From assembly GCF_964204865.1 (NCBI RefSeq), contig NC_135253.1, positions 15,314,001 to 15,378,000 on the forward strand: a stretch of DNA of 64,000 bases. The letters are read 5' to 3'. Below are positions 1-41,660 of this stretch, in pieces. This DNA is from Styela clava (Eukaryota). How positions within the stretch are numbered: position 1 is the first letter of the stretch; each line of letters opens with the position of its first letter. Position numbers and translations under genes: made by a program. Under the pieces are notes generated by a model. The model made no database searches and was not told the origin of the DNA. It was given only the letters and a program-made list of their open reading frames with translations.

Positions 1-24
1 TTTGATATTCAGTTCGAAATATGA
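1..24 (+). CDS. 3' end of an upstream sulfotransferase paralog (…FDIQFEI*)
   Basis: TTTGATATTCAGTTCGAAATATGA matches the end of SULT-A (7262-7285). The following 3' region (25-570) aligns with 7286-7650. Confidence 0.8.
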   Translation, partial: FDIQFEI

Positions 25-3865: not shown

Positions 3866-5202
3866 AATCCGTAAACTCAGGATACCTAGAGTGAATATTG
3901 CCGGAATGTAATTTGCAACACTATCATACACCAAGTAAAAATAGCAGTAGGCAGTTTTGAAAATTACTATACACAACAAATAAATTTGCAATTTTTTTTT
4001 ACCAAAACTCAGTGCGTCATTGTTGCATCATTATCTCAATTTTTGAAAGACAAAAGTCACATAGTTCCGAAAGGACATTTATAACGAATCTTAATCGAAA
4101 GATGTTCATTTAATATAAGTCACGAGTGACTTATGGAACTCAACATCGAACAACCTTACTTTGTAATACTCAAATAAGCGTTGTTCTCTAACAGTGAAAC
4201 TATTCAATACACACAGGAATGTGGCATTGCATGCCGTGTGTTGGTAGGCAAAGGGGAGGTTAGTCTAGCTCAGTCAAGATAAAGGTATTTTAGACTGTTC
4301 AGAAATAGCAGACCTACTGTTTAGCAAGAGAAACATGAGTAGGCAACCATGCATCATTTCGGCTCTAAACATTATCGAATTTGTTTCAACAAAAGACATT
4401 TCTTTCTAGTTACAAATCTCGTATATATATATTCATATTCGCAAATAGCCAAACAAGTTATTTATAAAGTCACATAATACTACATGGACTCAATTAACTC
4501 TATTTCCATTCAACACACTTGAGTCAAAGTGATTTTATTGAAAAAACTCAAATTTTGACCCGTCAATTAGTTACAAATATAAGGACAATTCCCTCTATCT
4601 GAAGCTTTTAGAGCTAAGTACACTCAGGCGTCGTTTAACTCGGTTCAGTGATTTTAAGCATTAAACATTAAGCTGTCTTCAGTACAGTACATACAATATC
4701 GCGTTAGGTATGACAGGAAGTATCGCCTTCGGACCTTTTAGTATTCCGAACTGGACGTTTGGCTGTGTTAAATGTTTTAGTTGAAATAACTTGAGGCCCG
4801 CAACATGACAAACCGTATCTCGTTGGCAATTGTCAATTGATACAATTTCACATATATAGCGGTTTTGCTTGCTTCCCAGAATTACTTGCTCATAGTCAAA
4901 ACTCGACAGTGAAACAGAATGGTCGCAAAATTATTGCTAGAGATAGGTTATAGGTGTTAAAAAGTTGGACATGGTTGTGCCAGGATTAATAATGGCACCA
5001 ACTGCCTGTTTATTAAGCCTTTTGCATAGCCGTATTTTATCAGTACATTACAGGATGTAACGTAAACTATTTTCAAACTGAGTCTCTTCGCGCCCAAGGC
5101 CAAATCTTTTTTATATCAGGTTGAATAATCTATTTGAAGCATGAACTAATTCTTTTCAGGTAACATCGAATTATCTACTGTAACTCAATATTTAGAAGCA
5201 AA

Positions 5203-7285
5203 ATGATGTTAGAGTTAGCAGTTTCCGCGACCGCATCGGCCTTGTTCGCTGTCATTGCCTACTTCAAATTGAAATCAATGAGAAAAGTTGACAAATTGAA
5301 ATTGCGTAAGTATAACGGCTGTGGTCCCGAGTTTATCAATTGTTCTAGGGTTACTGTTAAAATTATTTTCACGCTGTGTTTTCAGAATTGCAAATTTTAT
5401 TTTATTTCATGTTATAGAATTTATTATATCTCAATCGAATTATAACTATCGAAGGTATAGGAACATTCATACGGCGGTTTACTTTGCATGAGTATGATTT
5501 TAATACGATGAGCTAAGGTTTCAATATCTGGCGTCGACAGCCCTTGTCGTAATATTTTTTTATTTTTCTCTTTTAAGTACTTGCGATACTGGGAAAGTTG
5601 AAAATTCTACAAATGCTTCGTCTAACGGGACTAGATGTGCGGATGAGGCCAAAATTAACTGAAGTCACAGCTTCGAATGGATTCAAACTTCTTCTGCCTC
5701 CAATGTTAACTGTTACAGTTGAGGAAGTTTTAAAATTCAAAGTGAGAGAAGACGATGTATACGTTCTTACATACCCCAAGGCAGGTGAGAAAATATGGCG
5801 GCAAGTAGACTTTTAACCTCAGTTCGAAATTGAAAAATCCGAGAAACAATATTTATTATAAAATAATATAAAATTCATTGTATCCTTATTGTAATGTCAG
5901 GGACAACTTGGATGCAAGAGATAGCATGGCTGTTATGCAACAACGGAAATATCGATGAAGCAAAGAAACAGTCAGTCGCAATAAGAAGCCCGATGCTTGA
6001 AGCAGTAGATTTTACTATTAGCAATGGAATTCAGTCTCTAGAAACATGGCCGGAAAATAAGCAAAGGTATTCAATTATTTATGAAGCAGGAAGCAGTTTC
6101 CCCCTTTGAAACACACGCGGAAGTCTTCAGAATGATTTACAGCATTTTTCAAATTCTTTTGAATCAAAGTTTGTGAACATCGAATTGCCTTTCCCGAGTG
6201 TTCATTAGTTAGCACTTGTTTTGTTTAGCTTATGTTCATTTTTGCTCATAGGGAGAATTTCATGAGATCTATTCTAAAACATCAATATTGTTACATATTT
6301 TGCGCAAAAACCAAAGGTGGGTCAGAATTACGCTTCGCTAACGTTGCAATAATGAATGACTAAAGAGAAACGGCACAGGCAACAAAAGTAAAACTCTAAG
6401 TTGTGGATAATAGCCAGAAACAATTATTTCGTAAATCACAATCATACCAACACAAGCTTCAACATATAATCAGAAATTCACATTTAACGTTTCTATTCAT
6501 TAAAAAAAACGCATTTTTCATAGAGTGATAAAGACTCATTTTCCGTACGAACTGTTACCAGAAGACATCAAAAACGGGAAGAAATGCAAAATTATTTACG
6601 TAGCAAGAAATCCAAAGGATTTATGCGTTTCGTACTATCATTTCCATCGTATGATTACAGGAATGCCTGACCCTGGAACATGGGAAGAATTTCTTGCAAA
6701 ATTCTGTTCTGACAAACTAGGTTACGGAAGTTATTTTGACCACACTTTACAGTTTTGGGAGGTTGGTAATGGATAAATTATCATCTTTTAATTAAAATAC
6801 ATTTACCTTCTTGTATTTTATCTTGTGTATCTAGTGAAAACGAAATGTCTTGGCAATAATGGCAGCAACAGATGCGTATGTATTTTAATAATATAAGTAG
6901 TGCAATTGATCAGAATGTTATTTCATACTTTTAGAAATATCTAGACGACAAGCAACGTATATACTTCGTTACGTACGAAGACTTGAAAAAAGATCTTCGA
7001 AAGGAAGTTGAATCAATAGCGAAGTTTCTCGAAAAAAAGTTGTCGGATAAACAGATGGACGCCATTTCGGAACATTGTACGTTTGGCAGCATGAGCAAAA
7101 ATAAGAGCACTAACATGTCTGCTTCTGCAAAATATGGCATGGATCTGACAAAATCCAAATTTATGAGAAAAGGAGAAGTAGGCGACTGGAAAAACCATTT
7201 CACAATAAATCAAAGCTCAGCTTTCGATGTGATGTATCAAGACAAGATTAAAGGAACGGGATTAGATATTCAGTTCGAAATATGA
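5203..7285 (+). CDS. SULT-A: cytosolic-family sulfotransferase with N-terminal hydrophobic anchor, 354 aa; exons 5203-5305, 5578-5784, 5901-6066, 6524-6761, 6935-7285
   Basis: GT-AG introns keep frame (1065 nt). PSB loop TYPKAGTTW, catalytic His in IKTH, 3'-PB RNPKDLCVSYYHF and RKGEVGDWKNHFT are all present. Confidence 0.93.
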
Positions 7286-7950
7286 GCTCTAAGGATTCTT
7301 TATTAAGTTCATGTTGGCTAAGTGATTCAAATCCTCAGTTATCATTATGTACGCGCTTTGACTTATACAAATTTATACTTCCCATTTTTCCTGCACATTT
7401 TAGACAATGCAATTATTAATTAATGTGTTATATTTGTGTAGAAATTTAGAAGACAATTCAATACATACTTTTATATACCTAAAATTCCATCTCCCATTTT
7501 AATTCGCACTTTTTTATAGCTACTTTCTACATCCTCCCGTTTATTATTTTCGTGCTTGTGAAATTTATTGTTTGAAATTTATTTTAACTTTGGCTAATAA
7601 AGAAATCTTACAAATTGTGATACATGTACAGGGTGTACTTAAAGTCCATACACAGGAAATAATTCGATATTTTCAGTATGTAATTAAAACTAATGTTGCT
7701 CTCAAATGAAATTGGATGCATTGTACACTTGCTAAACCAATGATAAACCAACTGGTGAGTAGCTACCCTATACGCTGTATAATAATTAATTTTATTTATA
7801 CCAACAGTTAAAACAGTAGATTTTTGTGGATGATATGAGCTCTTGCGTCGAGTTTTTGACAATGCGTTGTATATTCCAATAGTCTGTCTCTAGTTTGTGA
7901 ACAAGAAGCGTTTAAAATCGATCGTTAAAATTTTTCAGAATTGTAATCTA

Positions 7951-10105
7951 ATGTTTGCGAATTTTGGGAACAGCAGCGGCTTTTGCTTCCATAGTTTACT
8001 ACAAGGTGAAGTCAATGAGACTCGTTGATAGATTACAACTCATTAGGAATCACAATATATTTCTATACTTATTGAATTAGATGTCATCTCCTAGTAATTA
8101 ATATTCAGCATGGCTGAATAATGTTTTATTATGAAGCGCGATATCGAATAACCATGCCGCTGACGTAAAAAGCTCGGATCAACAACATCAATTATAAAAT
8201 GTTCTTACAAACAAGTTTAGTTTTATGAAACTTGGCTTCTATTTTGAAGTCATAAATTAATTACACTTTTCAAGTACGGTCGATAATTGATTCCAATTGC
8301 CAGGATTCTCCTAAGTACACTACATTCCACTACAAATATTACTTATTAAAATACCTTCGACGTATTTCTGGTAATTTTCATGATTTTAGTTATGACGATG
8401 ACGAAGATGTCAAGTTTTACGAATACTACAGATGGCCGGACTGGATAACAGGATAAGCTTAATTTCAAAATTTTGCTGTTTCCGATGTATGCTGCTGCTG
8501 TTATGAAGTTTAGAAGTCGACGAGGACGATGTTTTCATCGTAACATACCGGAAAGGAAGTAGTGATTATATGATGAGTTTTGATGACATAATTGTCGCAA
8601 ATTACATTGAGTCATGTGTTAAGTGGGGAAAGTGTTTGAAAATTTTCACCCAATGGCATTTATTATTTGACATGAACTGTACAGTTTGTGTATTTCGGCT
8701 TTGCAAGTCCGTTTTCTCTGCAACTCATGAATCAACTGTCTTGAAATTTGCAGTGCTTGAAGATGGATACACCGCTAGATGGCTATTTTTTTTTAAATTT
8801 TTTTTCATCGTACCGGGCTCGATAATTCACCAGCATACTTTGCTATTACTACGAATATTGCACCATCGTCCTACCGATGGTGGTCCAGTTCCTACCGGTT
8901 ACTATATATGTGAATTTCCATCTTAATGGAACTTGATGATCAATGTTGATTTGAATGTTTTGAAAGCTCAAATCATAGATTACAGTGTTTATATACTGCA
9001 TAGGCTACCAGTAGCCTACCGTGTCCAATTATTGGCATTTCATGTCTCTCTTTTAACAAATTCAACGATCTATAAATATATATAGTTGATTCAAAACTGG
9101 TTTAGTGTAAGGCTTGTGACATTGTTTGGTGGAAGGTTTTACCTCAACTGAAGTCCGTTAAAGAGGAAGTATACCGCCATTCAAGGAGCATAGAGTTATG
9201 TAAGTGAAACAACTCGTAAAGATGCTTTAAATTGACTTGAAACGTTTTTCAACTCCAATCTCTTCCTTTCTTTAAAGGGTTCAACAAATATTTGTTTTTA
9301 CTTTTGGTATTGTTATAACAAAATTTGTTTACCGAGTAGTGAAGACTCATTTACCGTATGAACTTTTGCCTGAAGATATCAAAAATGCAAAATATCATAT
9401 GCAGCAAAAAAACCTGAAGATTTATGCGTTTCCTACTAGCATTTTCATTGAAGGTTTACAGATATGCCCGACCCCGGAAAATGGGAAAAACATTTAACCA
9501 ATTTTTGCTCTGGAAATTTATCCTTCGGTCGTTGTTTTGAGCACACTTTAAAGTTTTGGGAGGTTGGTTCAAAATTATTTTTGAATATGTTTTGAAAAGT
9601 TTAATATTTTCTAGCTTAAACAGCAGTATATATATATAAAGGCTTTTAATCGATTTCCGCATGTTTTTGAAAATAAATAAATATCAGAAAACACGAGATG
9701 TCAAGATAATGATTGGGACTTTGGACTTAAATAATGGATTCATAATAACGCTGTATTTTAACAGAAACATCAAGATAGCAAGAAACAAATATTTTTTGTC
9801 ACGTACGACGATTCAAAAAAAAAATGTGCGAAAAGAATTCGAATCGATATTAAAATTTATTGACATAGAATTGTCGGATCAACAGACAGAATTAATTTCA
9901 GAAAAAAGACCTTACTTTTGGCAACATGAGAATAACAAAACTACAGTGTCTAATTCAGCAAAATTTGGCATGGATCTTGATAATATTATGAGAAACGGAG
10001 GAGTAGGTAACTGGAAAAACCATTTCACAATAAATTATAACTCATTTTTCAATTTGATGTATCAAGAAAGAATTAAAGGGACGGGTTGAATATTCTGTTA
10101 GAAAT
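7951..10105 (+). pseudogene. SULT-B pseudogene
   Basis: Remnants of exon 1 (~7951-8042, YYKVKSMRLVDRLQL), exon 2 (~8390-8557, EDDVFIVT), exon 4 (~9336-9563) and exon 5 (~9764-10105, RNGGVGNWKNHFT) carry frameshifts. Exon 3 was not found. Confidence 0.85.
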
Positions 10106-10938
10106 TCAATATTTGGTTATGATATATGATAAATTCATACAAATCAGCATATATATATTTCATATATATATGCGAATATCTGTTTCATTACATATCTATT
10201 GACAAATGTGGTATAAGTAAATTTTAAATTGTATGAGTACGGAACCAAACTTTTAGCGCCAAATGCCTAAATTACCATATTTTCATATAAATTGAAAATT
10301 TTTTAGTTTGTTTTTCGCTTCTGCTCAACTTTTTGTAGTTGCTTTTCATATTTGGTAACATTTGTGTATAACAATCTTGATTTCAAACGATAATTATATA
10401 TGTTGTTTTAAGTAAGAACCAAAGTCCGAACATGTGATCTTGCCAAGTTGCTGTAGGCCTATTATGTTGATTATTTAACTAAAATGCCACAATCCGTATA
10501 TACAGGTACTAGTTATACATTAACTTGTACTGTAACTGTCCTGACTAAGCTGAAGCAGTTTATACTGATTGCGGTTGCGCCATACTATGTTAAGTTTCTT
10601 GTATCATAGACCTATGTAGCTTCTGGTTTAGACCAGGTAGAAGTTAGTCCATAAGTATCCTTATATACATACACATTATATGAGCTGTAGAATTATATCC
10701 GTTGTAGAGGCATCCGCTGTGTCAGTCCAAAGATCTTATATCTTATTCACACAAGCAGATTAGGTAAACAAGCGAACAATATTTGGAAACACTTGCCAAT
10801 CCCTTCAATATGTTACTGAATATTTACGTTACATATTTTGTTCTTTACGTGGTCAAATGAAGTTGAAACGTTTGATATATTATTGCTTCACAGATATCGA
10901 TACCAGGTTCATTATTTTGGATTATATTTCGCTCCAGC

Positions 10939-13900
10939 ATGATGATATTTGCAATCTCGGGAACTGCAGTGTCTTTATTTGCTTTCATTGTATACTATAA
11001 GGCGAAGTCAATGAGGCTCGTCGACAGAATGCAACTATGTAAGAATCACAAAATATTTCGCACGTGTCAATCACCAATTACGGTGAATATTTTATGGTCT
11101 CTCTGTTCTTGTCTATATATATATATATATACATATATATAGATGTTGAAATCAATAGACCATGCTTCGTGGCCATACCATACATGCATACAAGTTAGGG
11201 TTCGGGGTGCGAATATTTGTATTTGTTTACTTTTCACATTGCGTAATATTAACACCCAGCACCAACATACAATAAACCAGAAACTGAAAATTCGATCATG
11301 TTGACTATCGCACCCTTAATCGTTGTCTACAAAGAACATTTGTACGCAAAAATGTATTCGTGCCACCAAGCATTTCACCCATAAAGTTTTTCAATCATAA
11401 TTATTTGTGCCCACAAAATTGTACTCCGAAACATTGCCTACAAAACCTTTCGGTAGAACTGTACCTGTACGTAAAGGAGAAAGTACTAGGAGTTGATGGT
11501 TCAAACATAAATTGGAACAAGTGTTTCCTGATGTAAATAATCTTGTTAAATGGGAAAAAGTTATTGGTGAAATTGTGCAAACATGCATCGCCGACGACGA
11601 TTGTACATTTCACCGAATTCCGGGCGGTATAATTGGAATGCCTGGAATCCAGGCAAAACTATATATATACCGAGTTGATCAATTACAGTAATTCAGTTCA
11701 ATTACAAATATAATTACTCCCTTAAATATTTCAATTACATTACAATTACTCCGTGCAAAAAAATAAAATTACATTTACGATTACAACAGAGCAATGCTCA
11801 AATATATGGACACGTTTCACAGAGCGAAGCAGTCTTTACCCTTGACGCTACCACTACCCTCAAAAAAATTCCGAGTTTCGCGTAGCAAGAATTTACAGAA
11901 TCAAACCAGACAGCCAGTGTTTCCATATGGATTTAGCCTATTTTATCACAGCTATTTCTAGCCTAATTTTTGATTACTACTATTTATTGAACTACAACTC
12001 CTAAGAAGACTATATGATGATTCACTTATTTGATTCAAACTTAAATTTCCGAAACACAACTAAAAACTGAAGAATAGCATTCGAAATCGCAAAATGAGAT
12101 ATTATTACAACCACGTCTGAAAATCTGCCTGAGTGTCTTAACGGATGCGAAAAGGCATATTGTTATATCACTTTTTCGCATCTTGCTGATTGGCTAATGT
12201 TAAAAAATAAAAAAGGAAGGCGATTCTCGGAAAACGCCCCTTGGAAAAAGTTTCGCCTTTTTTCGTGTTATTGCGGGCCAGATGAAAGAACGCCGTAGTT
12301 TGGTGACCCCTGGTGTAATTGAATGTGTGATTGAGCCAACATTTTAGCAAATTACAATTACATTTACAATTACACAGAATGAAAATGCCTCAATTGCATT
12401 ACAATTACATGAAAAACTGTAATTAATTACAATTACAAATAACAATTGATCCAACTCTCATATCAACCTGGCGAAAATTTGTCGAACAGCGTTTAATTTT
12501 ACTCAACAGAAAAGTTTTTGAACTAGAATTTTCATTAAAAACAAAACGTATGTACAGACGGCATTTGTGGAAATTTTTCGTTTTTGTTTTCAGTACTGAT
12601 GATACTAACAAAATTGAACGTGATGAAAATACTTCAAATAACCGGACTGGATCAGAAGATGAGACCTGGATTAACTCATTTCACTGCTTCGAATGGTTTT
12701 AAAATTATGCTGACTCCAATTTTCGCTTCTGTTGTTAATGAAGTTTTGAAGTTCAAGGTTAGGGAAGACGATGTTTTCATCGTAACTTACCCCAAAGCAG
12801 GTAGGATTTATAACATGCCGGTAATTGTGTCGAAACGAATGTGACATGTGTTTAGAAATGTAAAAATTAAAGACCGCTAATATATCCTAGTATTTTTGTG
12901 TGTTTAAGGAACAACTTGGATGCAGGAGATAACATGGCTGATATGCAATGACGGAAACATAGATGGAGCAAAGAAAGAGTTAATTACAGTGAGGAGCCCG
13001 TTTCTGGAGACAGTGGACATTTCCATAAGCAAAGGGATTCAGTTTCTAGAAACTTGGCCCCAAAATAAGCAAAGGTTTGTAAGAATTCTATCTCAAAATG
13101 GAATGTTATTGTCGTCAAAGATCAAAATTATTCTTTACATTTGAATATTGTACCTGAACAAATGTAACCACGCGGTGCAACACTAAAATGAATATTTTCG
13201 TTTCCCATACCCGTGGGCATCGTAGGGTCTTATATGTGCAATATTTACCTCCTTAGATCCATGAGTCAGAATACAAGTAAAAAATTGTCGTGCCGAAAAA
13301 ATTGGACTCTTATCTTTGTTAGAAATTATACACCTTTCACAATCCTATTTACTCTTGTTTGGGTTGATGCTTTCGTTTTATTTACAGAGTAATAAAAACT
13401 CATCTGCCATACGAAATTTTACCAGCAGAAATCAGAAACGGTAAAAAATGCAAAATAATATATGTAGCAAGGAATCCCAAGGACTTATGTGTTTCTTATT
13501 TTCATTTTCATCGCATGATTCCGGGATTACCAAACCCAGAAACTTGGAGAGAATTTTTGTCGAAGTTTTGTTCTGATAATGTAGTGGGCGGAAGTTGGTT
13601 TGATCACACTCTGAAGTTTTGGGAGGTTGGTCTAAAATAAATTATTTATAATTTCAGTTTTTTGAAAAGTAGTCGGTAATTGCACTAGTTTTGTTATGAC
13701 GTCCGGTAATTGATGAGTTTGTATCAAAAAACATGTAGCTATTTCGAGGAAACTGGCTGCAATGAAATAACGAGATTTTCAAAAAATAAATTTGGAATGC
13801 TAGAGTGTACATTCGTGTCAAACTGATCCGAAATTGTATTGTATGTATTTTATCAGAAATATCAAGACGACAAGCAGAGAATATACTTTGTAAAGTATGA

Positions 13901-14207
13901 AGATTTGAAGAAAGATCTTCGAAAAGAAGTTGAATCTATATCAAAATTTCTTGGAAAAGAATTGTCTGGTGAACAGATGGACGCTATTTCAAAACACTGT
14001 ACGTTTGGAAGCATGAGAAAAAATAAAAAGACTAATATGTCCTCTTTAGCAAAGTATGGAATGGACGTGGCCAAATCAAAATTTATGAGAAAAGGAGAAG
14101 TAGGCGACTGGAAAAATTACTTTACTATAAATCAAAGCTCAGCTTTCGATATGATGTATCAAGAAAAAGTTGAAGGGTCGGGTTTGGATATTACCTTTGA
14201 AATGTAG
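10939..14207 (+). CDS. SULT-C: sulfotransferase with N-terminal anchor, 353 aa; exons 10939-11038, 12594-12800, 12909-13074, 13388-13625, 13857-14207
   Basis: Exon sizes 100/207/166/238/351 with GT-AG introns and an open frame; all PAPS-binding motifs and the catalytic His are present. Confidence 0.93.
11671..12459. mobile_element. non-autonomous hAT-like element with AATTAC subterminal repeats in SULT-C intron 1
   Basis: Ends GAGTTGATCAATT … AATTGATCCAACTC; clustered CAATTACA repeats at both ends. Confidence 0.65.
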
Positions 14208-14326
14208 TTTTGTTTAGTCGTTGCCAACAAATTATTTCATTAACCATATAAGACATTTATAAATCGATATGCAAAAAATTATCAAAATACAGTGTTTTAT
14301 ATATAGTGAAATGTCACATAAGAAGT

Positions 14327-16100
14327 AGAGATGTACCGATGTATCGGTATTGGCAATATCGGCCAATTTTTCGGTGTAGTGTATCGGTATCGGCTAAATA
14401 AAGACCAATATTTCCGATATGTTTACCTTTTTGATATGATCCAGAATGTTTTAAAATAAAGTTGGAATACTGATGTTTAAGTTATTTTTTGCTCGGGGGA
14501 ATCGTAAACTAGGAGCTACACACGTCCCCACCCCCGCGAGTAGAAACGAGTATGGGATTCTGACCTGTTCTTAGTTATTTATCAGTCAAACGCTCAACTA
14601 ATTTGGCTATTTTTACTGTCAAATTTTTACATTGACGTTTTTAATATTACATAGTAATAATGAATAAATATATCAATCAAATATTAGTAGATTTTCTAAT
14701 GTGTAAAATACAAAATATGTCGTTATATTGGAACAAAATCGTGCGCACGTAACTCAATGTATCAACTTGATAGGATAAGTAGGCTAATTATTTACTTATT
14801 TCACCACCCTGGTAGCAAAACCTTATGAGCAGGGATGGCCATATCCATCGACAATTTTTAATACTTTTTAAAAATATTATCGATACTGAAATTCCGAATG
14901 CATTGTATAATCCCCCACAATTCACTTTCCTAAAATCCAGGGAAATATAAATTGAACTTTCATAATGTTATCATTGTAAAGCAGTCATAAGGCATGTATG
15001 ATATAAATGAAATTGCTTTAAGAAAGTAGACTTAATAAGCATTACAGCACAAAAATAAGAGCAACTAGGCTCCCAGTTTCAAATGATAGTGTAGAAACGT
15101 CTTTACTGACAGCATACGCACTTTTTGGCACGGTTATAAATTCTGACTGTTTATCGTTAAGCGCTGGTGTCATTTAGTCCATCGACATCTTTAAGCTAAA
15201 TTCCGACTCAATTATCTCTCTACACAGGTATTAAATATTGTGATTCCATTAATTTTAATTTTGTTCAACTACACGATAATATTTGCGATATATTATGAAA
15301 TAATAAAATCAGAAACATCCTCGACATGTTATAGGTATTTTCTAGCCAGCGCTGATTGAAATCCTCTCATGTCGATTGTAATTTATTGTCGCGACTCACG
15401 ATTATGATAAAACATAAAGCGAAATATATGCGAAATGTTTTCAAGTAAAACGTGGACGACGGCGCTACAATGTGTGGTCGATATTCGATATTCTTATAAT
15501 ACGATATTCGAAGGTCGCGTTATTACTATTAAATTCGAATTGGACATCCCTTCCATATTTGTGAAGAATTGAACACCGAGATTACGAGCTTCAGTACACA
15601 ATGCATCTGAATCAATTAACGCATTTGAATCCCAAACATTAATTTCTTATGATGTATTATCTAGGGCTGGGAATTTCGGAGAAAACACTTTAACCGTTAA
15701 CCGGGTAAAATTAACCGGTTAATCGCAGCGTGACATTTGACGTAATAATTTACAATTTTAGCTTGTTACGTCACAATGGTTACATATCAATTTTGAGTAT
15801 TCTTATCCTGGTATCGCTCAAAATTATTCACGAATGGAGATAGTTTCATGATCGCTCTGCTGCAAGAGATATGCAGCGTGCTTCGAACATATGGAGGTAT
15901 TTTAGTAAAACCTGAATCTGTTATTAAATGTCATTTATGTCAGGGGTGTCAAGCTTGCGGCCCGAGGGCCGCAGGCGGCCCCAGAGAACTGCCAATGCGG
16001 CCCGCGAACACTCAACAATAATTGTGTTTTTTTTGTAAGTTTTTTATTTATTTAAATAATCGTCAAAGTTTTGCAATAGTTTTGCAGTATTAAGAAACTT
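14327..16100. mobile_element. cluster of hAT-type MITE fragments
   Basis: TAGAGATGTACCGAT (14327); CAGGGATGGCCA…TGGACATCCCT pair (14830-15551); TAGGGCTGGG (15662); CAGGGGTGTCAAGCTTGCGGCCCG Charlie-like end (15940). Confidence 0.65.
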
Positions 16101-17913
16101 TTTTTGGGTCGAGGGTCGGGGAAACATCCATCGACTCGCACTATATTTATTATATTTTCTAAATTGGATTAATCCAGCACTTCATATTGATATACCCTAA
16201 TTCTTTATATTGAAGTTTGTGTAACGTCGTCTGTATCTCAACTCAGCAAATACAGTGTCACTGATACGATGACTTGTAGTCTTGCACGGCCCTCGTCAAT
16301 TGCGGAAATATTGCATGTCTGTTTATTCAATTGAACTTTTGTATTGTTATTTTTATTTTAATTGTGTCGATACAATATTCCATGCACGACGAAATAAACA
16401 TCTGAATCTATTACAGGGATGAAATAGGAAGTTTGCTTAAGATTGTTAAATGGCATACTGATACCGGTATTCATTTCGTCACACTGATTGCATAGGCAGA
16501 ACATAGACGTAGTTAATCTTAATATAGATCTCCTTCTTATAGAGCCAGGTCTAACAGACTTTCATCACGTTCAGTTCGCTAGTGGAGCAATGTTCAAATA
16601 TCTAAAATCCAAAAGGAGTACAACCGTGAAGGCCGCGCTCGAGGAAATTAAAACAGTATTCCAGTGAATCAAAATGAAACAGCAAAATTTTGAATATGAT
16701 ATTGGGTGTCAATAAATCAGAAAAATTCAGATGGAACGTAACAGCTTTTTGGCGAGTTCTGATAGCCTTGTTCCACGGTATGCTCCGGTCCTTAGGGATT
16801 GGCGATGTTGCCGAATAACCAAGTTCAATATTCAAATACCTTATACCCGCCCGGTAACCAGGCGAGAAGGTATGCTAATACTTGAGTTTAAAATGAGTAA
16901 GCCTGAATAAGAAACAGTCCCAAGTGAATACATGAAGCTCGATGGTCGGTTACCTACAATTTTATTTTTCAGCATAAAATTTTGTGTGTCAATTTAATAA
17001 ATCATTAACAAATACGCTGAATCAAATGCGCTCGCTGACCTAGTAATATCGCACCTTGAGGTACCACAGCAGCAACAATTGCGCTACGATTGCAAATAAA
17101 AATTAATGGTTCGCGTGTTGGTTGGTAACTTTAGTCAGGTGCCCTATTAGGAATATTATTGGACACGAAATGTACATATGAATCGTTTAGTTATTATTAT
17201 GTTGTTGTTCTTGTTGCTATTTTAAATATTACTCATTACTCCTGTTTTTCTATATAACAAAATTGGACGGTAAAATTTGTGTGAAAGTTTACAACTTACA
17301 GTAGAATCACCGTCCTCTGTTGGCGGATTGAATTGCCACTTACTTAAGTATGATTCACCACAAAGTATTCTACTGAAGCGAATGTACATTGTAACCATGA
17401 ATTTCAATGTTATTTAACCCCTCAATAGTAATAGTATGTTGAAGTAAATGGAAATACGTCATTCTAGCTACTTCCCTGATGAAGAGTTGTCGCGACAGCT
17501 CCAAGCATTAGCTTTTTGCATATAACCTTCTTTGTGTTTCCGGCTTCGTCTGAGTGTTGAAATAATAGTGTTTGTCATGTTCTTGTGATTTTGCTTTGGA
17601 TTCGACCGTATAACTGTAATAAGGTTTAAGTGTGTATTTGTTTTTGGATTCTTTAATAATTGGATTGTGCATATTTATAATATACGAAAATTTGGCATTA
17701 CAATACATTGTGTGCTTATTGACTTCTGAAGAGTTTAGATCGGAGTTACACTCTATTAAACGTGTGTCAACCCAATAACACGTGAGTGAAGCGCAGATAG
17801 GGATCCTCTCCCCTATACTACTCTGTTTGTATTTGTCAAGTCTTTATCCAATATTATGCTCTTCGCCAAGCTCAGAAAATCAGTATCAGTAGATTAGTAT
17901 AAAAGTTGTGAGG

Positions 17914-20900
17914 ATGCTGGTATTGACAGTGGCAGGAATCTTAGCAGCCTTGTCAGGCGTCGTTTTGTACTTCAAGTTGAAGTCTATGAGACTTGTCGAC
18001 CGAGTGAAACTACGTAAGTGTTTTATTAATAATGTAATAGTGCCTTACCTCAAAGCGTCAATCCCGAATTCTAATTATCGCTCAGGTCGCAGATACGATC
18101 GGTTTATAAATTTTTTATGATTGGATTGGGTCCAAAGTTGCAGTAATGACTTTTATAATTTCACACTAAATTTTGCTCGTTTTTATAATTAACGGGCTCC
18201 TATATTGTATTTAAGAAATGGCAATACATGCAAAGCTGAGGATTCCACAATTATTTCAACTAACCGGACTAGATACACGGATGAAGCCAAAACTAACCCA
18301 ATTCACGGCTTCGAATGGTTATAAAATTCTGCTGCCCTCACCGTTTACTGTTGCAGTTAATGAAATTTTAAAATTCAAAGTAAGAGAAGACGATGTTTTC
18401 ATCGTAGCTTATCCCAAAGCAGGTGAGGAAGAAAAGTAAAATGAAGGAATCGCGTGGTTTGTTAAACAACAAATTACAAAACTGAAAATGCCTATTTGTC
18501 TACCGTGTTTTCCCGAAAATAAGACAGTGTATTATTTCAATTTTCTTTCGAAAAATACCATTGGATCTTATTTTGGGGGGATGTATTTTATTTTCATTTA
18601 GAGAATTACGAGATTTTCAAATATACAAAATATGAAAACCGATATCCATTTACTTATAAACAACACGTTCTTATTTAAAATAACTACTAAACATAGATTC
18701 CTTTTAAACGAGTAGGAAAAATTTCTTGCTATCGAATAGGTCAAAAAAATTTGCGCTGTCGACTAGGTCTTATTTTAAAAGGGTAGGGCATATATTAAAT
18801 GATTTTAAAAATTTATGATAGGTCTTATTTTCATGGTAGGTCCTTTTTTCGGGGAGATCCGGTAGTACCAATGGAGCGGGATTCGATTTTTTGTGTGTGA
18901 TGAACGTCATCAAAATTAAAAATTGCGCAGCATGTATCGGTTCTGCGATCGCGATCTAGTGGTCAGGCGACGTCGGGAAGACCTCGTACCAAATCAAGTC
19001 AATTGGTACTGTGAAATATTAGATAGAATTATTAGAATACTTATATTGTATTACCTCGTTTTGGCTTTCGTGTCCATATATTTGAGCATTGCTCTCTTGT
19101 TGTAATAGTATTCGAACTTATTCCACATAAATTCATAAAGTCTATATGTATTGATGTTTGCTTTGTGTTATTTTTGTATTTTACAGGAACGACTTGGATG
19201 CAAGAAATTGTGTGGTTAATATGCAATGATGGAAATATAAAAGAAGCAAATAAACAATTGCTTACATTGAGAAGTCCGTTTCTGGAGATAGTGGATTGTC
19301 ATCTTCGCAATGGATTTCAATCTTTAGAAAATTGGTCAAGAAATAAACAAAGGTATATACCGTCACGCTAATACCCAAATTGCGTAAGTCATATTCAGCA
19401 ATTTTGAGAAAAACGTAATAATGATATTGTTATGCCATTGAGAGTAAATAATTTCCCATGGTTCAATTTTTTAGTCGTCTCCGAATTTGAAATTTATTTG
19501 TATGATGTAGGCACGTGACGTCATAATGGCACACTGTGACTTATGCAAAATGTGCCTATGACTTGGGAACATAGCAATTTTGCAACTTGATTTTATCCAT
19601 CAGTCCTGAAAATCAAACATTCGAAAAACATATGTAATTTACATTATTCACGATGTCTAAACCCCTAAACAGCCTATCTGTTTTAACTATTATTCTTTTT
19701 ATGTTTGATATATACAGTGATGAGCTGGAAAGATCGTAACAACCGGAACGCACCAAATTCGTGAAAATTTAATATATATATATTTACAACACGACGCTAC
19801 CAGTAATTTTGTCTGTGGTAAGATAGAGCCGAAGAACTACAATGAAATATGAAAAAATTATCTGAAATATGACTGTTTAAAATTGAAAGAATCTTCATAC
19901 TAATTCAATACAAATGTTATTATTAGATAGATATTCACGGGGTCAAAGGTCGGCGAAATATCCATTAAACGTTACTGCTGTGCACCAATTATTTGCCAGC
20001 TGTAATGTAAAAAGAATTATGATGCAACAAAACATCAATTAATAACTAAGTTTCCCGCAGAAACTAGACTTTTCGAACCATAATTTTATTTTAACAACAG
20101 GAACGCAAACGCGATAAAACGTCCAACAACCGGAACGCCGTTCCGGTTCGTTCCGGCTACAGCTCATCACTGGATATATATATATATATTTCATCAATAT
20201 AACGCACTCTGTACACCCACCGAAAATAAGACTTTCCCTAAATAATAAATATAAAGAATAAAAAAGAAATGAATGAATCCTTAAATAAAAGCCAACCAAT
20301 ATGAATTGGACTTAGAAAGTGGATATCACACGTGCTCACTTCACTTTAACAATTGCAATAATGTGCACGTCACATTAATCTCCATTTTATGCGTTTCGGA
20401 ATCCTTGGGATAAAATCTGAATTAACTGACAGGTGCGCAATTCGGTTATTAGCCTGACGATACACCTTTATTAGTTGATTCTAATGATGAAACTAAAACA
20501 AACAAATACAATCAAAATGTGAACATTGTATCACGGTCACATTCTATGCAAATTTCGACAGTGAATAGTTTTATTGAAATAATGATATATTATGATGGTC
20601 TCTCTGTATCCCATTTATTTCATTACCGAAGTCGATTCAATTCCAGCCAAACTAAAAATTTGGAATTTTCATTATATCTTTGTTATTTATAAAAAAAAAA
20701 TCCGGGGCTTTTCAGCATTAGGAAATAATAAAAACTCCATATTACTTACTAACAGCTTACCCACAACGTTTTAATGTATCGTTGAGTAACGCAATTAATC
20801 CTTTAATTTTTCTTCAAATGGTTGAATTATATTCAGTTAATAAATAGGTCACAAGAACTTTAATTTCAGAGTGATAAAGACTCATCTTCCGTACGAACTG

Positions 20901-22061
20901 TTACCAGAAGACATTAGGAAAGGAAAAAGATGCAAAATTATTTACGTAGCAAGAAATCCAAAGGACCTATGCGTTTCATACTATCATTTTCATCGCTGCT
21001 CTAAAATGTTGAAAGACCCAGGAACGTGGCCAGAATTCTTCGCAAATTTCTGCTCACACAGAGTAGGATTTGGAGATTGGTTTGACCATACGCTAAAATT
21101 TTGGGAGGTTGGTTTGTAATTAATTTTTGTGAAAATTATTATTGAATAATACATTTAACTTGTGGTTTTCAAACTTTCTGACGGAGCGAAACCGCAATGA
21201 AACATTGCGAAGGCTCGAGGAACGTTTGTGCAATACCTGCGAGGTAGTAAGAATGATTGTATAAACTATATATATATATGAGCAAACTTAATGCTGACAA
21301 AACAAAATAATCTTTAAAATGCAGCAAGTTTGATCAAAAAAAAAATTCATAAATCTGATAATATATTATACGTTTCCGGAAAATTCGCCGCAGGAAATTT
21401 CGCCGTAGGAAATCTCGCCGCAGGAAATTTTGCAAAGGGTATTCAAAAACCAAACTGTTGTTATCAAAAATACTTGTTTTACAGCAAAATGCTCTTGCAG
21501 CGAATTTTCATGCGGCGAAATTTCCTAGAACCATATTAACTCTCGGCTTTAGATGTAAACTCCCGGAACCTCTGGTTGAAAATCAGAATATATGTTGACA
21601 TGCTTGTATTGTTTATTCGATAATGGTTCACATATATTTATATATAGATCACGAAAATAAATTTATTCAAACTAAACACTCACGTTACTGATTCATGTTA
21701 TTAGAAATATCAAGAAGACAAGGAAAAAATATATTTCGAAACTTACGAAAATTTGAAGAAAGATCTTCGAAAAGAAGTTGAATCAATGTCAAAATTTCTT
21801 GAAAAAAAATTGTCGGAACAACAACTGGACGCTATTTCTGAACATTGTACATTTGACAGCATGAGTAAAAACAGAAGCACAAATATGTCAATGTTAGGAC
21901 AAAATAGTATTTCCACGAAGAAGTCAAAGTTCATGAGAAAGGGACAGGTTGGTGATTGGAGAAATTATTTTACGATAAATCAAAGCTTGGCCTTTGATGA
22001 GTTATACCAAGAAAAATCAAAGGAACGGGATTTGATATTTCTTTTGGAAATTGAATTTTAA
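17914..22061 (+). CDS. SULT-D: sulfotransferase with N-terminal anchor; exons 17914-18013, 18216-18422, 19187-19352, 20870-21107, 21705-22061; last ~13 codons frameshifted
   Basis: GT-AG exons 100/207/166/238 nt with intact motifs AYPKAGTTW, IKTH and RKGQVGDWRNYFT. One A is missing in the run at ~22012-22016 relative to SULT-E. Confidence 0.9.
18503..18862. mobile_element. Tc1/pogo-like MITE in SULT-D intron 2
   Basis: TA|CCGTGTTTTCCCGAAAATAAGAC … TTTTTTCGGGGAGATCCGG|TA; related copy in reverse orientation at 37057-37321. Confidence 0.75.
19715..20172. mobile_element. hAT MITE in SULT-D intron 3
   Basis: Perfect TIR CAGTGATGAGCTG / CAGCTCATCACTG; perfect 8-bp TSD GATATATA. Confidence 0.9.
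21161..21585. mobile_element. Charlie-like hAT MITE with a nested 15-bp-repeat (GGAAATTTCGCCGCA) element; shared with SULT-E intron 4 (~30627-31275)
   Basis: GTGGTTTTCAAAC … GGTTGAAAATC ends; inverted GGAAATTTCGCCG arrays at ~21371-21532. Confidence 0.6.
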
Positions 22062-22751: not shown

Positions 22752-25700
22752 TTATTGTCCTCCAATCATAACATCAAGAACTTTTTTAAAGAACTGCTTC
22801 GGTTCTTCCAATTCATGAAACAGCAGGTCGGCGACATCATTATTCGCCAGGTCTTCATTCTGTAGAAAGAAAGCGTGTGCTTTCTGAAACATCGTACCAG
22901 AGAAAAGGTGGCCAACTTTTGAATTGGGTATTGGGCATCCTAAGAGGTTGTTTAGTCGCATTGCTTCGCAAATAATGGTTTGCCATTGTGCAGAAAAGTG
23001 CAATGCTACCTTGTCATAACTGCTTTTAGGTATTTGACGAAAAGCATCTGGCAAGGAGTCACCACCGATCTCATTGTAAGAACACGAAAACGTCAGTGCT
23101 AGTGCTTTACACACTTCGTCTAGTGGTGCCTGTTCTTGACATCTTGCCCAACTGTAAATACTTAAAACGAGAAGCTTGTTTTCCTCGCCAAGAACAGCTG
23201 CATCTGAAAAATCCGCATTCTGTATCATAGCTTTCGTAAGATATTCTTCTCGTGCGGCCATGATCACTTCACAAGTGTCGCATGCTCTTAATTCATCCCG
23301 TGTCATTTCAAGATGTAATTCTTCTGTTTGGTCCGCGTTTGGAACTGTCACTGCCATCACGTTTGCTGCATAATTTTGTCCTATTCGATCCATTTCTACA
23401 ATATGACGTTCAACCACATTATCATTTTCCTCCCTGTTAAAATGGATGATACATCCCAATTCGTAGAGCGATTGGCGAATCGAAAACGATGCTACATGGG
23501 AAGTGTTGTTCTCTGGGTTATCCACCATAAGCGGCATGAAACTCGCTGGGTCTTGCATTCCTTCGACGATCTCAAAACAATCTGGCTTTACGTCAGCTGA
23601 TTCGCCACCGTTAAGCAATGTATCCACATAGGTTTGAATATCAGGAAGCTGTTGATATATACGTAAAAATTCTCTGAATCTTTCTTCTGGAAAGTTTGGA
23701 TTGTTTGCCACGAATAATCGGATAATTTGATCGTTACTTTGATAACGGGCCAGCCACACCAACGCACATTCAATTGCATTTCGGAGATTCCTCGGACGCC
23801 TTACTTCCTGTAAAACAACGTTTGCTGTTATTAACTATGTAATTGATGCTTCGACTGATGCTCACCCACTATTAAACTATTTTACTGTTTTTTTTTCTGT
23901 ATATATATGTATATATATATATATGCATTGTGAATCACTACAAAGTCACGAAAGTTGCTTTAGTGAAAAATACATTGGAAAAAAATGTTCTGCGTATCTC
24001 GAGCTCCACAAGAGGGTAGAAAATTGCGACATTGCAAATAGTTCGCATAAATGTACATAGTTTGGCTATTATTATATTTTTCAAAAATTCCGGGGTATAT
24101 TGCTAGTGATTGTACAATCTCCCAGTTACAGATTTAAAACCATACCCAATGACTTATAGTGATTACTAAATCAAAAGTTTCCCATTTAATAATGAATATT
24201 TTCAGTCTCACTTTCCATATAAGACCTCATTGATTCCATCTAGAACCTAATTTCACCTTATGCCATTCTAAACATGGATATTTTATAGTTATTCACCCCA
24301 GGAAAAACTTGCAAGAAATCCTCAAAGTTTCCACCGAGGATTCCGTCTTGTGTGCTCATCAATGCCCCGAGAACAGATAACGCATTCCTCGGAGTTTCAA
24401 ACGTAATTTCCAAGATTGACTGACGAAATATTTTCCCTCGACAAGACCGTTGAGGTCGTTTTACCTAACAATGAATGTGAAATAAAACCCCAAGATCGAC
24501 TTTGATATAAAATGAAGCATATTTGTGAAAAGAATATAGAAATGAGATTTAACAAATTAAATAAAAGTAATATATATATTCATTATAAAATTATATCTTA
24601 TTATATTTTCGTGGCCAAGGCTCCCTCCAAGGTGCGCAGTACCAACGACCATTTGCGCAGTAAAATCTATATGGCTCGTGGCCCTCTTTGGAGGCTTTCA
24701 GCACTCATGGCCCTCCTGTTTAACAATTCAGTGGCATTTATATACTTTGATTGGTAGATTCCAAATTCCATTATGATCAAACAGTTCATGCCCATCAAAG
24801 TGAAAACACCCCATGATATAACTAAGCAATGAAACTTTAGGAAGAACGGGGAGGAATAATATTGTGAATTAAAAAGGAAAATCTGTCGGAAACCGTTGGT
24901 CTGACCAGGCCTGTCCGTGGGAATAGAATTCCCATCAGAATCCAATGGTTTGGAATGGGACAGCACACATTTTTATATCCCATGGGACACGAAAACCGTA
25001 TGATTTTCGGGGAAATGATGGTAAAACACTTCGTTATGGACTTCGTTTCCATATATTTGAGCATATCTCTCTTGTTAGGTATAAAGAGCCAAATATATTC
25101 ACCATCAACAATATACTTCGTGATGGGGCTGATGGACACATTTATAAGGGTTTCACCACATTTGAACCCACGTACATTTGAACCCACAACAATTGCACCT
25201 GTATACTATTTTTTGTTTACGGATATTTGAACCCATGCTAACCCTAACCCATGAATTTTAGCACCCTCATATATATTGAACCCGCGGATATACGGGTGCA
25301 AATGTATGGGTTCAAATGTACGCGGGTTCAAATGTACCGTCACCATGTATAATAGTTATGAATATAAAGTTAACAAAGTCCGTAAACTTGGTTATTTTGT
25401 ATGTCTATTCGTACATGTAGTCATGTTTAGTAGACGCTAAACCCAAATTTAACAATTTTTATCGAATTTCATTCCAATGGGATGGGCTGGGACAGGCATA
25501 ATTGCTATGGGATGGTATTGGAACAAAGAATATGTTCCATGGACAAGCCTGGGTCTAACTCTAACCTAACTAGAAATGCCTATTCCACGTTTCAGTGCTG
25601 TATCTTGGTTATCACTGTTGATTGTGATGTCACACACGTGTATGTTACGGCCTAGTTCTAGTATCTCTATTTATCTATACAAGCGCGGTCGGAGTCGCAT

Positions 25701-28359: not shown

Positions 28360-31300
28360 AAGCTGGTATTGGCCGTGACAGGAACCTTAGCAGCCATGTT
28401 AGCGCTCATTATTTACTTCAAGTTGAAGTCTATGAGATGTGTCCACAGAGTAAAATTACGTTAAGTGTTTTCTCAATATTGTAAATAGTGCCTGTCAAAG
28501 AGTTGATCATTAATTTCAATACTTGCTTTGTACCGTCAAACTTTACACAATTTACGTTTTTAATGATATCTAATTTGATATGTCTTTTCGCGAATAGTCG
28601 AAAACCTTCTTTTTTCTTGATTTATGGACAGGCACTATACCTATCGATCGTCTTAAGAAATTGGGTTTGTTCTGATTGAAATGGGCCCAAATATGGAAAA
28701 TGTTACTATATAAATAACTTTTATGTTTTCAAATTCTTTTAATCCTACGAGGCCACATATTTCACGCTGAATTTTGCTGGTTTTTATAACCCACGGGCTT
28801 CTATCTTGTATTTAAGAAATGGCAATACATGCAAAGCTGAGGATTCCACAATTACTTCAAATAACCGGACTAGATACACGTATGAAGCCCAAACTAACCT
28901 AATTCAGGGCTTCGAATGGTTTACATCGTTTTAAATTAAAAGTAAGAGAAGACGATGTTTTCATCGTTACTTATCCCAGGGCAGGTGAAGAAAAAAAGTC
29001 AAATACCAGCATCACGTGATTTAGTAACAACAAATTACACGACCGGACATGCCTATTTATTAAGTAGCAATAGGACCAAATATTCCACCCAAAACTCTGG
29101 TGTTTTTATGGTTAACGGGTATATGACATTCGATACAATTATTTTATAAATTACCATTGTCATAGTCTTTTGACTTCGCGTCAAATTTTTTGAGCATTTC
29201 TTTTTTGTGGAACACGGAGTGGACCTATAGATTATTTTGTTGTCGTTGTTGTTAAAAAAAATTTGTTGTTGTAATGAAAAAATTGCTTTTCTATTTAATT
29301 ACTTTTAATTTTCAGGGGTCAAAAATTGGTGTTGTCGTTAGAACGCTATTACTTTTATTCATTTCTAACATTTCTGTGGTCTCTGCGGGATTCGATTTTT
29401 GTGTGTGATGACGTCATATAAATTAAAAATTGAGCACCTCATATCGGCTCTGCGTTCGCGATCTGGTGGTCAGGCGAAGTCAGGAAGACTCCGTACCAAA
29501 TCAAGTCAAGCTATACTGTGTAATATTAGATACTACTTCGTTTTGGCCTGCGTGTCCATATATCTGAGCATTGTTCCCTTTTTGTCATAGTAGTCGAACC
29601 TATTCCAAATAATTCCAAGTTTATATGTTTTGACGTTTACTTGGTGTAATTTTTGTATTTTGCAGAAACGACTTGGACGCAAGAAATTGTGTGGTTAATA
29701 TGCAATGATGGAAATATGGAAGAAGCAAATAAACAATTGCTTACACCGAGAAGTCCGTTTTTGGAGATAGTTGATTGTCATCTTCGCAATGGAATTCAAT
29801 CTTTAGAAAATTGGTCGAAAAGTAATCAAAGGTATGGTGCCTTCATTAGTTGATTCTGTCAATTCTAATGATGAAGAGAAACGAATCTGTATCTCCGACA
29901 CTTTCTTTGCACATTTCGACGGTGAAGTTTTGGTGAAATAACGATATATTATGATGCATCTTCTATATTCCAGGTATATTCACTACCGAAGTTTGAGATG
30001 TGGGTTCGATTCAATTTCGGCCAAACTAACAAGTTGGAATCTTCATTATTTCAAAAAAGGAACAACAGTGCTTTTTTGCATTAGTAGATAATGAACAACT
30101 TCTTATTACTTACTAACGGCTTACCCACGACGTGAAAGGAAAACAGTTTAGTTTCAATGTAACGTTAAATAACGCCATTATGTGTGTCATAAAGATTAGG
30201 AGATAATAAACATCTTGTTATTTACTTACTAACGGCTTACCCGCGGCGTGAATAGCACACAGTTTAGTTTTGCAGTTAAATAACGCAATAAATAAATTTT
30301 GTTCTCTTTAATTGGTTTAATAATACTTTTATTTAGTGATGAAGACTCGTTCTCAGTACGAACTGTTACCAGAAGACATCAAACAAGGAAAGAAATGCAA
30401 AATCATTTACGTAGCAAGAAATCCAAAGGATTTATGCGTTTTAAACTATCATTTCCATCGTATGCTTACAGGAACGCCTGACCTAGTAACATGGGAAGAA
30501 TTCCTCGCAAATTTCTGCTCACACAAAGTAGGATTAGGAGATTGGTTTGACCATACACTAAAATTTCGGGAGGTTGGTTCTAATTAATTTTTGTGGAAAT
30601 AATTATCGAAAAATAAATTTAGCTTAGTGGTTTCCAACCTCTTTGACGGAACGGAACCCCAATTAAACATTGCGGAGGCTCCAGGAACGCTTGTGCAATA
30701 CCCGCGAGGTAGTAAGAAAATATATATATATATATATAAACAAACTTTATGCTGGCACAACAAAAAATTTTTTAAAATGCAAAAGTTTTTAATGATATAT
30801 ATAAATATTTCATAATTCTAACAATATAATATACGTGTCCGAAAAATTCGCGCATGAAAAATCGCCGCAAGAGCATATAGCAGTAAATCAAGTATTTGTG
30901 ATGGAAACAGGTAGGATAACAGGGTTAGGGTATGCTCTCAAATAAAGAATCCTTGGTACTCCTAGAGTATGCGCACCAAGATGTCGCACAACCTGAACCC
31001 TGACATGGTACACAACCTGAGTTCAGGTTGTGCGCCATCTTGGTGCGCATACTTCAGGAGGTCCCCCTTTTTAAAATATTTAAAAATAAGAGGTATCTCA
31101 AAAAAATTTAACTGTTTTTATCACAAATACTTGTTTTACAGCAAAATGCTCTTGCGGCGAAGTTTTATTCGGCGATTTTTCCTATGCGGCGAAATTTTCT
31201 GCGGTGAATTTTTCTATGACCATATTATGAACTCTCGGCTTTAAATGTAAACTCTCGGAACCCCTGGCTGAAAAGCAGGCTATATGTTAACATGTCTGTA

Positions 31301-31718
31301 TTGTATATTCAACAAAAGTTCACATATAGGTCACAGAAATAAGTTTATTTAAAACTAAATACTCACGTTACTGATTCATGTTTTAGAAATATCAAGAAGT
31401 CAAGGAAAGAATATATGTCGTAACTTACGAAAATTTGAAGAAAGCTTTTCGAAAAGAAGTTGAATCAAAAAAATGTCGGAACAACAACTGGACGCTATTT
31501 CTGAACATTGTACATTTGACAGCATGAGTAAAAACAGAAGCACAAACATGTCAATGTTAAGACAAAATAGTATTTCCACGAAAAAGTCAGAGTTCATGAG
31601 AAAGGGACAGGTCGGTGATTGGAGAATTTATTTTACGATGAACCAAAGCTTGGCCATTGATGAGTTATACCAAGAAAAAATCAAAGGAACGGGATTTGAT
31701 ATTTCTTTTAGAAATTGA
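28360..31718 (+). pseudogene. SULT-E pseudogene (SULT-D duplicate)
   Basis: ATG changed to AAG (28360); exon 2 has CAA>TAA and a deletion; PSB Gly>Glu; catalytic His>Arg (KTR); exon 5 has a deletion and frameshift. Confidence 0.9.

Positions 31719-40940: not shown

Positions 40941-41660
<720 letters not shown>

Follow-up and report, generated by a model that had tools for sequence, protein, structure and literature searches.

A candidate N-terminal signal anchor encoded by a separate first exon in SULT1-like sulfotransferases of Styela clava

Cytosolic sulfotransferases (SULTs) are defined as soluble enzymes. Golgi type II sulfotransferases carry a basic cytoplasmic tail before the transmembrane segment and place their catalytic domain in the lumen. 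Microsomal P450s carry an apolar run at their very N-terminus, and a net positive flank behind it keeps the enzyme on the cytosolic face; catechol-O-methyltransferase (COMT) occurs in membrane-bound and soluble forms that arise through alternative starts. We analyzed a stretch of 64,000 nucleotides of the Styela clava genome (C4:15314001-15378000, ~35% G+C with intron-rich genes; hereafter the window, to whose first letter all positions without a chromosome name refer), in which three intact SULT genes, SULT-A, SULT-C and SULT-D, each open with a short exon encoding an apolar N-terminus. We consider it on balance probable, with considerable room for doubt, that these genes encode functional small-molecule sulfotransferases of the SULT1-like type that depend on 3′-phosphoadenosine 5′-phosphosulfate (PAPS) and carry an uncleaved N-terminal signal anchor from the extra first exon.

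Gene structure, catalytic domain and first exon

SULT-A consists of five exons on the forward strand (1065 nt, 354 residues), with GT..AG boundaries at every intron according to both sequence reading and a script. Exon 1 (5203-5305, 103 nt) encodes Met1, the apolar run and the motif KLKSMRKVD, and ends at the phase-1 donor GTAAGT. Exon 2 (5578-5784) holds a linker and the beginning of the SULT domain up to YPKA, and the PAPS-binding loop continues with GTTW in exon 3 (5901-6066). Exon 4 (6524-6761) encodes KTH and RNPKDLCVSY, and exon 5 (6935-7285) encodes RKGEVGDW and the stop codon; these last three exons are marked by both Pfam matches and RNA contigs. SULT-C (353 residues) and SULT-D (355 residues) show the same five-exon layout on the same strand, with GT..AG introns and exon phases identical to those of SULT-A. 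The anchor exon of SULT-C is 100 nt long (10939-11038) and is followed by exons at 12594-12800, 12909-13074, 13388-13625 and 13857-14207; that of SULT-D is also 100 nt long (17914-18013), followed by exons at 18216-18422, 19187-19352, 20870-21107 and 21705-22061. In each of the three genes an in-frame stop precedes the exon-1 ATG, and no other ATG of that frame lies between the two.

The catalytic domain is complete. The Pfam family PF00685 (Sulfotransfer_1) matches SULT-A in exon 3 (E 1e-5), exon 4 (5e-28) and exon 5 (3e-25); the window genes were searched exon by exon, and full-length comparisons were made on proteins from the database searches, where the family covers residues 92-346 of P0270 (E 2e-82) and likewise matches P0272 (E 2e-80). 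The PKxGTTW loop that binds PAPS, KTH with the catalytic histidine, RNPKDxxVS and RKGxxGDW are all present in A, C and D. We aligned 13 proteins of the same architecture, 12 from S. clava and one, P0163, from a Logan assembly. K101, G103, T104, T105, W106, K161, T162 and H163 are invariant in these 13 sequences, as are R186, N187, D190, S194, R315, K316, G317, G320, D321 and W322.

Every exon peptide of SULT-C is an exact substring of the RefSeq protein P0270 (XP_039249224.2), and every exon peptide of SULT-D of P0272 (XP_039248395.2); these genes are thus already modeled in RefSeq with exon 1 included, under generic names of the form "sulfotransferase 1x-like", such as "sulfotransferase 1E1-like". 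Since the models exist, the novelty lies in how they are read and not in the sequences, which were already known. The protein of gene A is absent among the database matches listed; a full-length S. clava relative of matching length, P0004, came from the search of cluster representatives with its exon 5. An earlier sequence-only reading of this locus had quoted N-terminal peptides and the motifs YPKAGTTW, KTH, RNPKDxxVSY and RKGxxGDW, had described first exons of 100-103 nt with a hydrophobic segment, had taken A, C and D as intact and two further copies, B and E, as dead, and had assigned the catalytic domain to the soluble SULT1-like type. The peptides and motifs read exactly as quoted, the exon models bear out both the exon lengths and the division into living and dead copies, and the best solved relatives are all cytosolic SULT1 enzymes.

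The proteins share one order of parts: an apolar run, an invariant tyrosine with a basic motif, ~40 linker residues and a catalytic domain of the cytosolic type. The run was compared in 14 proteins, the 13 aligned sequences plus gene A, on the Kyte-Doolittle and Eisenberg scales. It comprises 18-21 apolar residues beginning right after Met1 in all 14, with a mean Kyte-Doolittle hydropathy of 1.8-3.0 over 17 residues, and contains no Lys, Arg, Asp or Glu in 13 of them; the exception is gene A, with Glu4. Residues 2-18 differ between the aligned proteins yet remain apolar, so the earlier statement that hydrophobicity persists while the sequence diverges stands. Directly after the run lies the conserved motif Tyr..[KR][ST]M[KR]xxD at residues 19-29; M1, Y19, M25 and D29 are invariant in 13 of 13 aligned proteins and S24 is kept in 12. 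To judge from these sequences, the invariant Met and Asp behind the run are more than topology would need. No Pfam family matches residues 1-86, and alignments to solved SULT1 chains begin no earlier than residue ~72, which makes the extension ~50 residues longer than an ordinary SULT1 N-terminus. The amphipathic helix that had been proposed to follow the basic patch found no support: the best 18-residue windows of the 14 sequences give helical moments of 0.13-0.38, never above shuffled sequences, and the 15 residues that open exon 2 of A, C and D give 0.14-0.22, less than shuffled sequences do on average.

Substitution counts among A, C and D (pairwise, by the Nei-Gojobori method) show that exon 1 is clearly constrained by purifying selection, less than the catalytic core, and that its replacements keep the apolar character. 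The run of exon 1 falls in its first 20 aligned codons, and there the proportion of nonsynonymous differences (pN) is 0.28-0.40 and that of synonymous differences (pS) 0.61-0.72, ratios that are rough because synonymous sites are near saturation; in the catalytic exons 4 and 5, pN is 0.09-0.19.

The splice joints were traced in assembled contigs. Thirteen sequencing runs cover part of the window, and nine that cover a small share are presumed to be RNA; contigs of four runs (X1, X2, X3 and X6) were examined over positions 5190-11180, which tell of splicing and give neither expression levels nor transcript starts. All four introns of SULT-A are skipped at the predicted sites. The joint of exons 1 and 2 (5305 to 5578) is exact in contigs of X2 and X3, two runs of one study, which have 0 mismatches and extend upstream of 5190, and it recurs in a form with two variant letters in X6, from a second study; X1 contigs do not show it. 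In SULT-C, a contig of X1 covers exon 1 as far as 11038, and its next 30 letters are those of 12594-12623, where exon 2 begins. The splice of exon 1 to exon 2, for which the sequence-only reading had proposed RNA-seq junction reads as a check, is thereby seen in contigs for A (three of the four runs) and for C (one run). Expression is shown for A and for the first two exons of C.

Orientation of the N-terminus and rival explanations

The position of the run and the charges around it bear on the orientation. In 13 of the 14 proteins the 15 residues after the run have a net charge of +1 to +5, and in all of them the run sets in at residue 2 and is preceded by no basic residue. A run with nothing basic before it and a net positive flank behind it resembles an N-out/C-in anchor and not a Golgi type II segment. 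By the positive-inside and charge-difference rules the more positive flank stays in the cytosol, and long apolar runs favor translocation of the N-terminus; read by these rules, the segment would be an uncleaved anchor with a lumenal N-terminus and a cytosolic enzyme, most likely in the endoplasmic reticulum (ER). The apolar run would insert into the ER membrane so that the short N-terminus reaches the lumen, while the catalytic domain, together with the positive flank, would remain on the side of the cytosol, the compartment in which PAPS is made. From there the enzyme would work on lipophilic acceptors at the surface of the membrane. The lack of cleavage, the orientation, the compartment and the substrate are all features that we infer.

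Several observations weigh against this assignment. The sequence-only reading had treated the basic patch after the segment as conserved and as the sign of an N-out/C-in protein; the charge pattern holds in 13 of 14 proteins, and fails in P0168, whose flank is acidic rather than basic, at net -2. A Pro-rich hinge such as that of P450s is absent. Some Sulfotransfer_1 enzymes act in the Golgi lumen, so the supply of cofactor is compatible with a lumenal domain as well. Exon 1 was not found within 4 kb of nine of the 27 exon-2-type matches in the genome; the other 18 have a recognizable exon 1 upstream. The run labels read only "RNA?", although the spliced joints indicate that the contigs derive from RNA. 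RefSeq further contains predicted isoforms that lack the anchor (P0271, P0161, P0165 and P0282), and soluble forms may therefore coexist with the anchored ones.

The most serious rival, which we regard as unlikely, takes the apolar N-terminus as a type II anchor or as a signal peptide that can be cleaved off, so that the SULT domain would be lumenal or secreted and PAPS would have to be imported into the Golgi. A hydrophobic stretch right after Met1 is indeed typical of signal peptides too, small residues stand near the end of the run in a few copies (..VIA-YF in A and ..ISA-MY in P0004), and in the wider family the amphioxus model P0090 starts with what resembles a signal peptide. Yet a run of 18-21 residues exceeds the usual length of a signal-peptide hydrophobic core, no basic residue precedes the run, a conserved small-x-small site is lacking, and the flank behind the run is net positive in all but one protein. 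An invariant Tyr19 with its motif would moreover be odd in a peptide that is discarded, and the domain is nearest to cytosolic SULT1 enzymes.

A signal anchor for another membrane that faces the cytosol is a slimmer prospect. The outer mitochondrial membrane, an option already named in the sequence-only reading, receives Tom20-like proteins whose signature is a short N-terminus, a single transmembrane segment and a basic C-terminal flank, all of which the Styela proteins resemble; peroxisomes and lipid droplets belong to the same class of destinations. The high hydropathy of the run would favor the ER by work on Tom20, and neither point is direct evidence. Least probable of all is that exon 1 is an untranslated 5′ leader and the working enzyme an ordinary soluble SULT from the exon-2 Met. 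The RefSeq isoform of SULT-C that starts in exon 2 (P0271, 318 residues) and the 279-residue isoforms of other members speak for it. Against it, no ATG in frame stands between the upstream stop and that of exon 1; 21 copies and another species preserve frame, phase and a motif visible at the protein level; exon 1 has a lower pN than pS; and the dead copies B and E have lost exactly the exon-1 ATG.

Among the RefSeq isoforms, P0273 of SULT-D joins exon 1 straight to exon 3 in frame. Its product is probably non-functional, because the start of the PAPS-binding loop is lost.

Family size, dead copies and distribution

The family is large. A profile search of the genome found clusters on C6 (3.29-3.54 Mb), C4 (15.29-15.37 Mb), C1, C3 and C5, and in the clusters examined together with the window there are at least 21 exon-1 copies on these five chromosomes: 19 by motif scan, that of SULT-E by tblastn, and one whose motif contains Glu. 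Of the 19 motif-scan copies, 17 run into a GTAAGT-like donor of identical phase; dead B and C4:15290189 do not. The exon-1 peptide of SULT-C has nine genome matches, all at SULT loci on C4 and C5, with no hint among them of a donor gene for exon 1.

Seven SULT copies, A to G, lie in the window on the forward strand, as found by tblastn with the five exon peptides of A. SULT-B (7955-10086) is dead: its start ATG is absent, the exon-1 donor is lost, stops and frameshifts interrupt it, and exon 3 was not found; no spliced RNA contig over it was seen in the four runs. One contig of X6 matches positions 8888-9054 inside it with 0 mismatches, away from the exon remnants, and may be a transcribed repeat or unspliced RNA. 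SULT-E (28363-31709), which lies beyond the range of 5203-22061 covered by the sequence-only reading, has AAG as start codon, a stop and a deletion in exon 2, KTR in place of KTH, and a frameshift in exon 5. Remnant F (41010-42423) retains pieces of exons 4 and 5 with stops, and remnant G (49494-53662) decayed exons 3-5.

The tandem array extends upstream across the edge of the window (C4:15290189-15314021): window positions 1-21 are the end of a further copy's last exon. Three more exon-1 copies lie in this upstream part, at C4:15290189, 15292469 and 15311857, the last a near twin of that of A. Between the copies, a short peptide PRNL..CALVWLAR occurs twice on the minus strand (23616-23795 and 44208-44258) with chance-level matches to the exon-4 query, and looks like a repeated element. 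TA-rich simple repeats lie at 11103-11180, just past exon 1 of SULT-C, and at 10147-10174, past SULT-B; as repeats, both were passed over in the comparison with the contigs.

The anchored proteins form a single lineage. We built a careful tree of 43 rows from which the columns of the run were excluded, and the 13 anchored rows fall into one clade (support 92/90), joined by P0174 at 100/99. P0174 has no apolar N-terminus, is at most 54% identical to this genome, hence foreign, and stands as sister of the anchored clade. P0163, with 58-76% identity per exon to this genome, at the locus of P0157, retains the run and KSMRKCD; at so low an identity it is taken as an ortholog from another species. 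The phylogeny suggested by the sequence-only reading thus returned one clade, and no described membrane-bound clade of this kind was found in the literature searched. A link to vertebrate SULT1 had a support of 83 in a quick tree that included the long amphioxus row P0090, and was not resolved once that row was dropped. The anchored clade takes in every S. clava protein of at least 349 residues that the SULT1-type searches returned. Single-exon SULT genes on C10 and C17 encode proteins of 312-331 residues with hydrophilic N-termini (Kyte-Doolittle at most 0.17); ordinary soluble SULTs thus coexist with anchored ones in this genome. In the tree these single-exon genes (L021, at C10:8687501-8690000, and L023 and L024, on C17) form a long-branched clade apart from the anchored family.

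To count apolar N-termini among homologs, we considered proteins of at least 250 residues with a Met start and asked for a 19-residue window of hydropathy at least 1.6 within the first 60 residues. The homologs were the best 120-150 matches of each search, and the word search was limited by length and words. Such an N-terminus is found in three of 73 cluster representatives (P0004, a borderline horseshoe-crab protein and the amphioxus model P0090, whose N-terminus resembles a signal peptide), in 11 of 116 homologs from the word search, all of which are S. clava proteins or P0163, and in one borderline case among 52 further proteins retrieved with a profile of the 13 anchored proteins. Outside the anchored family, this leaves two of 72, none of 105 and one of 52 homologs, three cases among the 241 proteins counted in all and each of them borderline or different in kind. 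Residues 1-100 of P0154 recovered only three S. clava proteins among 58 candidates. Beyond S. clava, only P0163 is an anchored protein among the matches listed for the profile of 13, a search that made no direct test of Ciona or other tunicates. The top cluster representatives are from echinoderms, hemichordates, amphioxus, lamprey, shark and arthropods, with no tunicate among the matches listed. The family has so far been seen in S. clava and one further species.

Possible substrates and comparison with known systems

Ascidians, including the stolidobranch Halocynthia, contain alkyl sulfates in notable amounts and possess alkyl sulfatases (PMC6780655, PMC13390645); the portions of these two reports available to us name no sulfotransferase that makes the alkyl sulfates. 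We infer, and only infer, that the anchored SULT genes may be their source. A wider proposal can be framed in which styelids converted all their SULT1-type enzymes into ER-anchored proteins that face the cytosol. These would make ascidian alkyl sulfates, possibly sterol sulfates, at the membrane of fatty-alcohol and sterol synthesis, with the invariant juxtamembrane motif docking a partner; this we regard as speculative and quite unlikely.

The literature search, with supplements and the tunicate gene lists they possibly hold outside its scope, found no description of a cytosolic-type SULT with a transmembrane anchor, and "membrane-associated SULT" in the texts it reached refers to Golgi enzymes. 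The predicted anchor on SULT1-like enzymes is to that extent an undescribed feature, and here it marks a whole expanded clade, conserved on its own exon, within an enzyme class defined as soluble. If correct, it would represent a natural re-targeting of a soluble phase II enzyme to a membrane and a simple system for how tethering alters access to lipophilic acceptors, and it would point to specific genes as candidates for making the alkyl sulfates of ascidians, whose biosynthesis is unexplained.

We compared the Styela proteins with four known systems. First, they resemble vertebrate cytosolic SULT1 enzymes in the full Sulfotransfer_1 domain and in every motif for PAPS binding and catalysis. 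Among solved chains, the best matches are SULT1C3 (2reo), SULT1C2, SULT1B1, SULT1A3, SULT1D1 and SULT1E1 (E 4e-71 to 1e-62), and identity to vertebrate SULT1B1, 1C and 1D1 is 41-47% over ~78% of the query; SULT nomenclature sets family membership at 45% identity or above. The Styela proteins differ from them in ~50 extra N-terminal residues, with the apolar run on an extra exon, and in having five coding exons. The soluble enzymes have neither a transmembrane nor a signal segment, whereas an apolar run of apparently membrane-spanning type is found in all 14 proteins compared.

Second, Golgi type II sulfotransferases, such as those acting on heparan sulfate and carbohydrates, share the sulfotransferase fold and a single N-terminal membrane segment. 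In place of a basic tail before that segment, the Styela run begins at residue 2 with nothing ahead of it and its charge lies behind it, and the domain matches cytosolic SULTs, not the Golgi enzymes. Third, microsomal P450s show the same succession of an apolar run right after Met1 and then basic residues, found here in 13 of the 14 proteins, and the predicted topology, with a lumenal N-terminus and a cytosolic catalytic domain, is also the same. The fold is unrelated, and where P450s have a Pro-rich hinge the Styela proteins show the invariant motif [KR][ST]M[KR]xxD.

Finally, COMT is likewise a small-molecule conjugating enzyme with and without an N-terminal anchor, and RefSeq predicts isoforms of both kinds here. 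It belongs to another enzyme family; in Styela the soluble isoforms are predictions only, whereas each paralog has an anchored protein as its main model.

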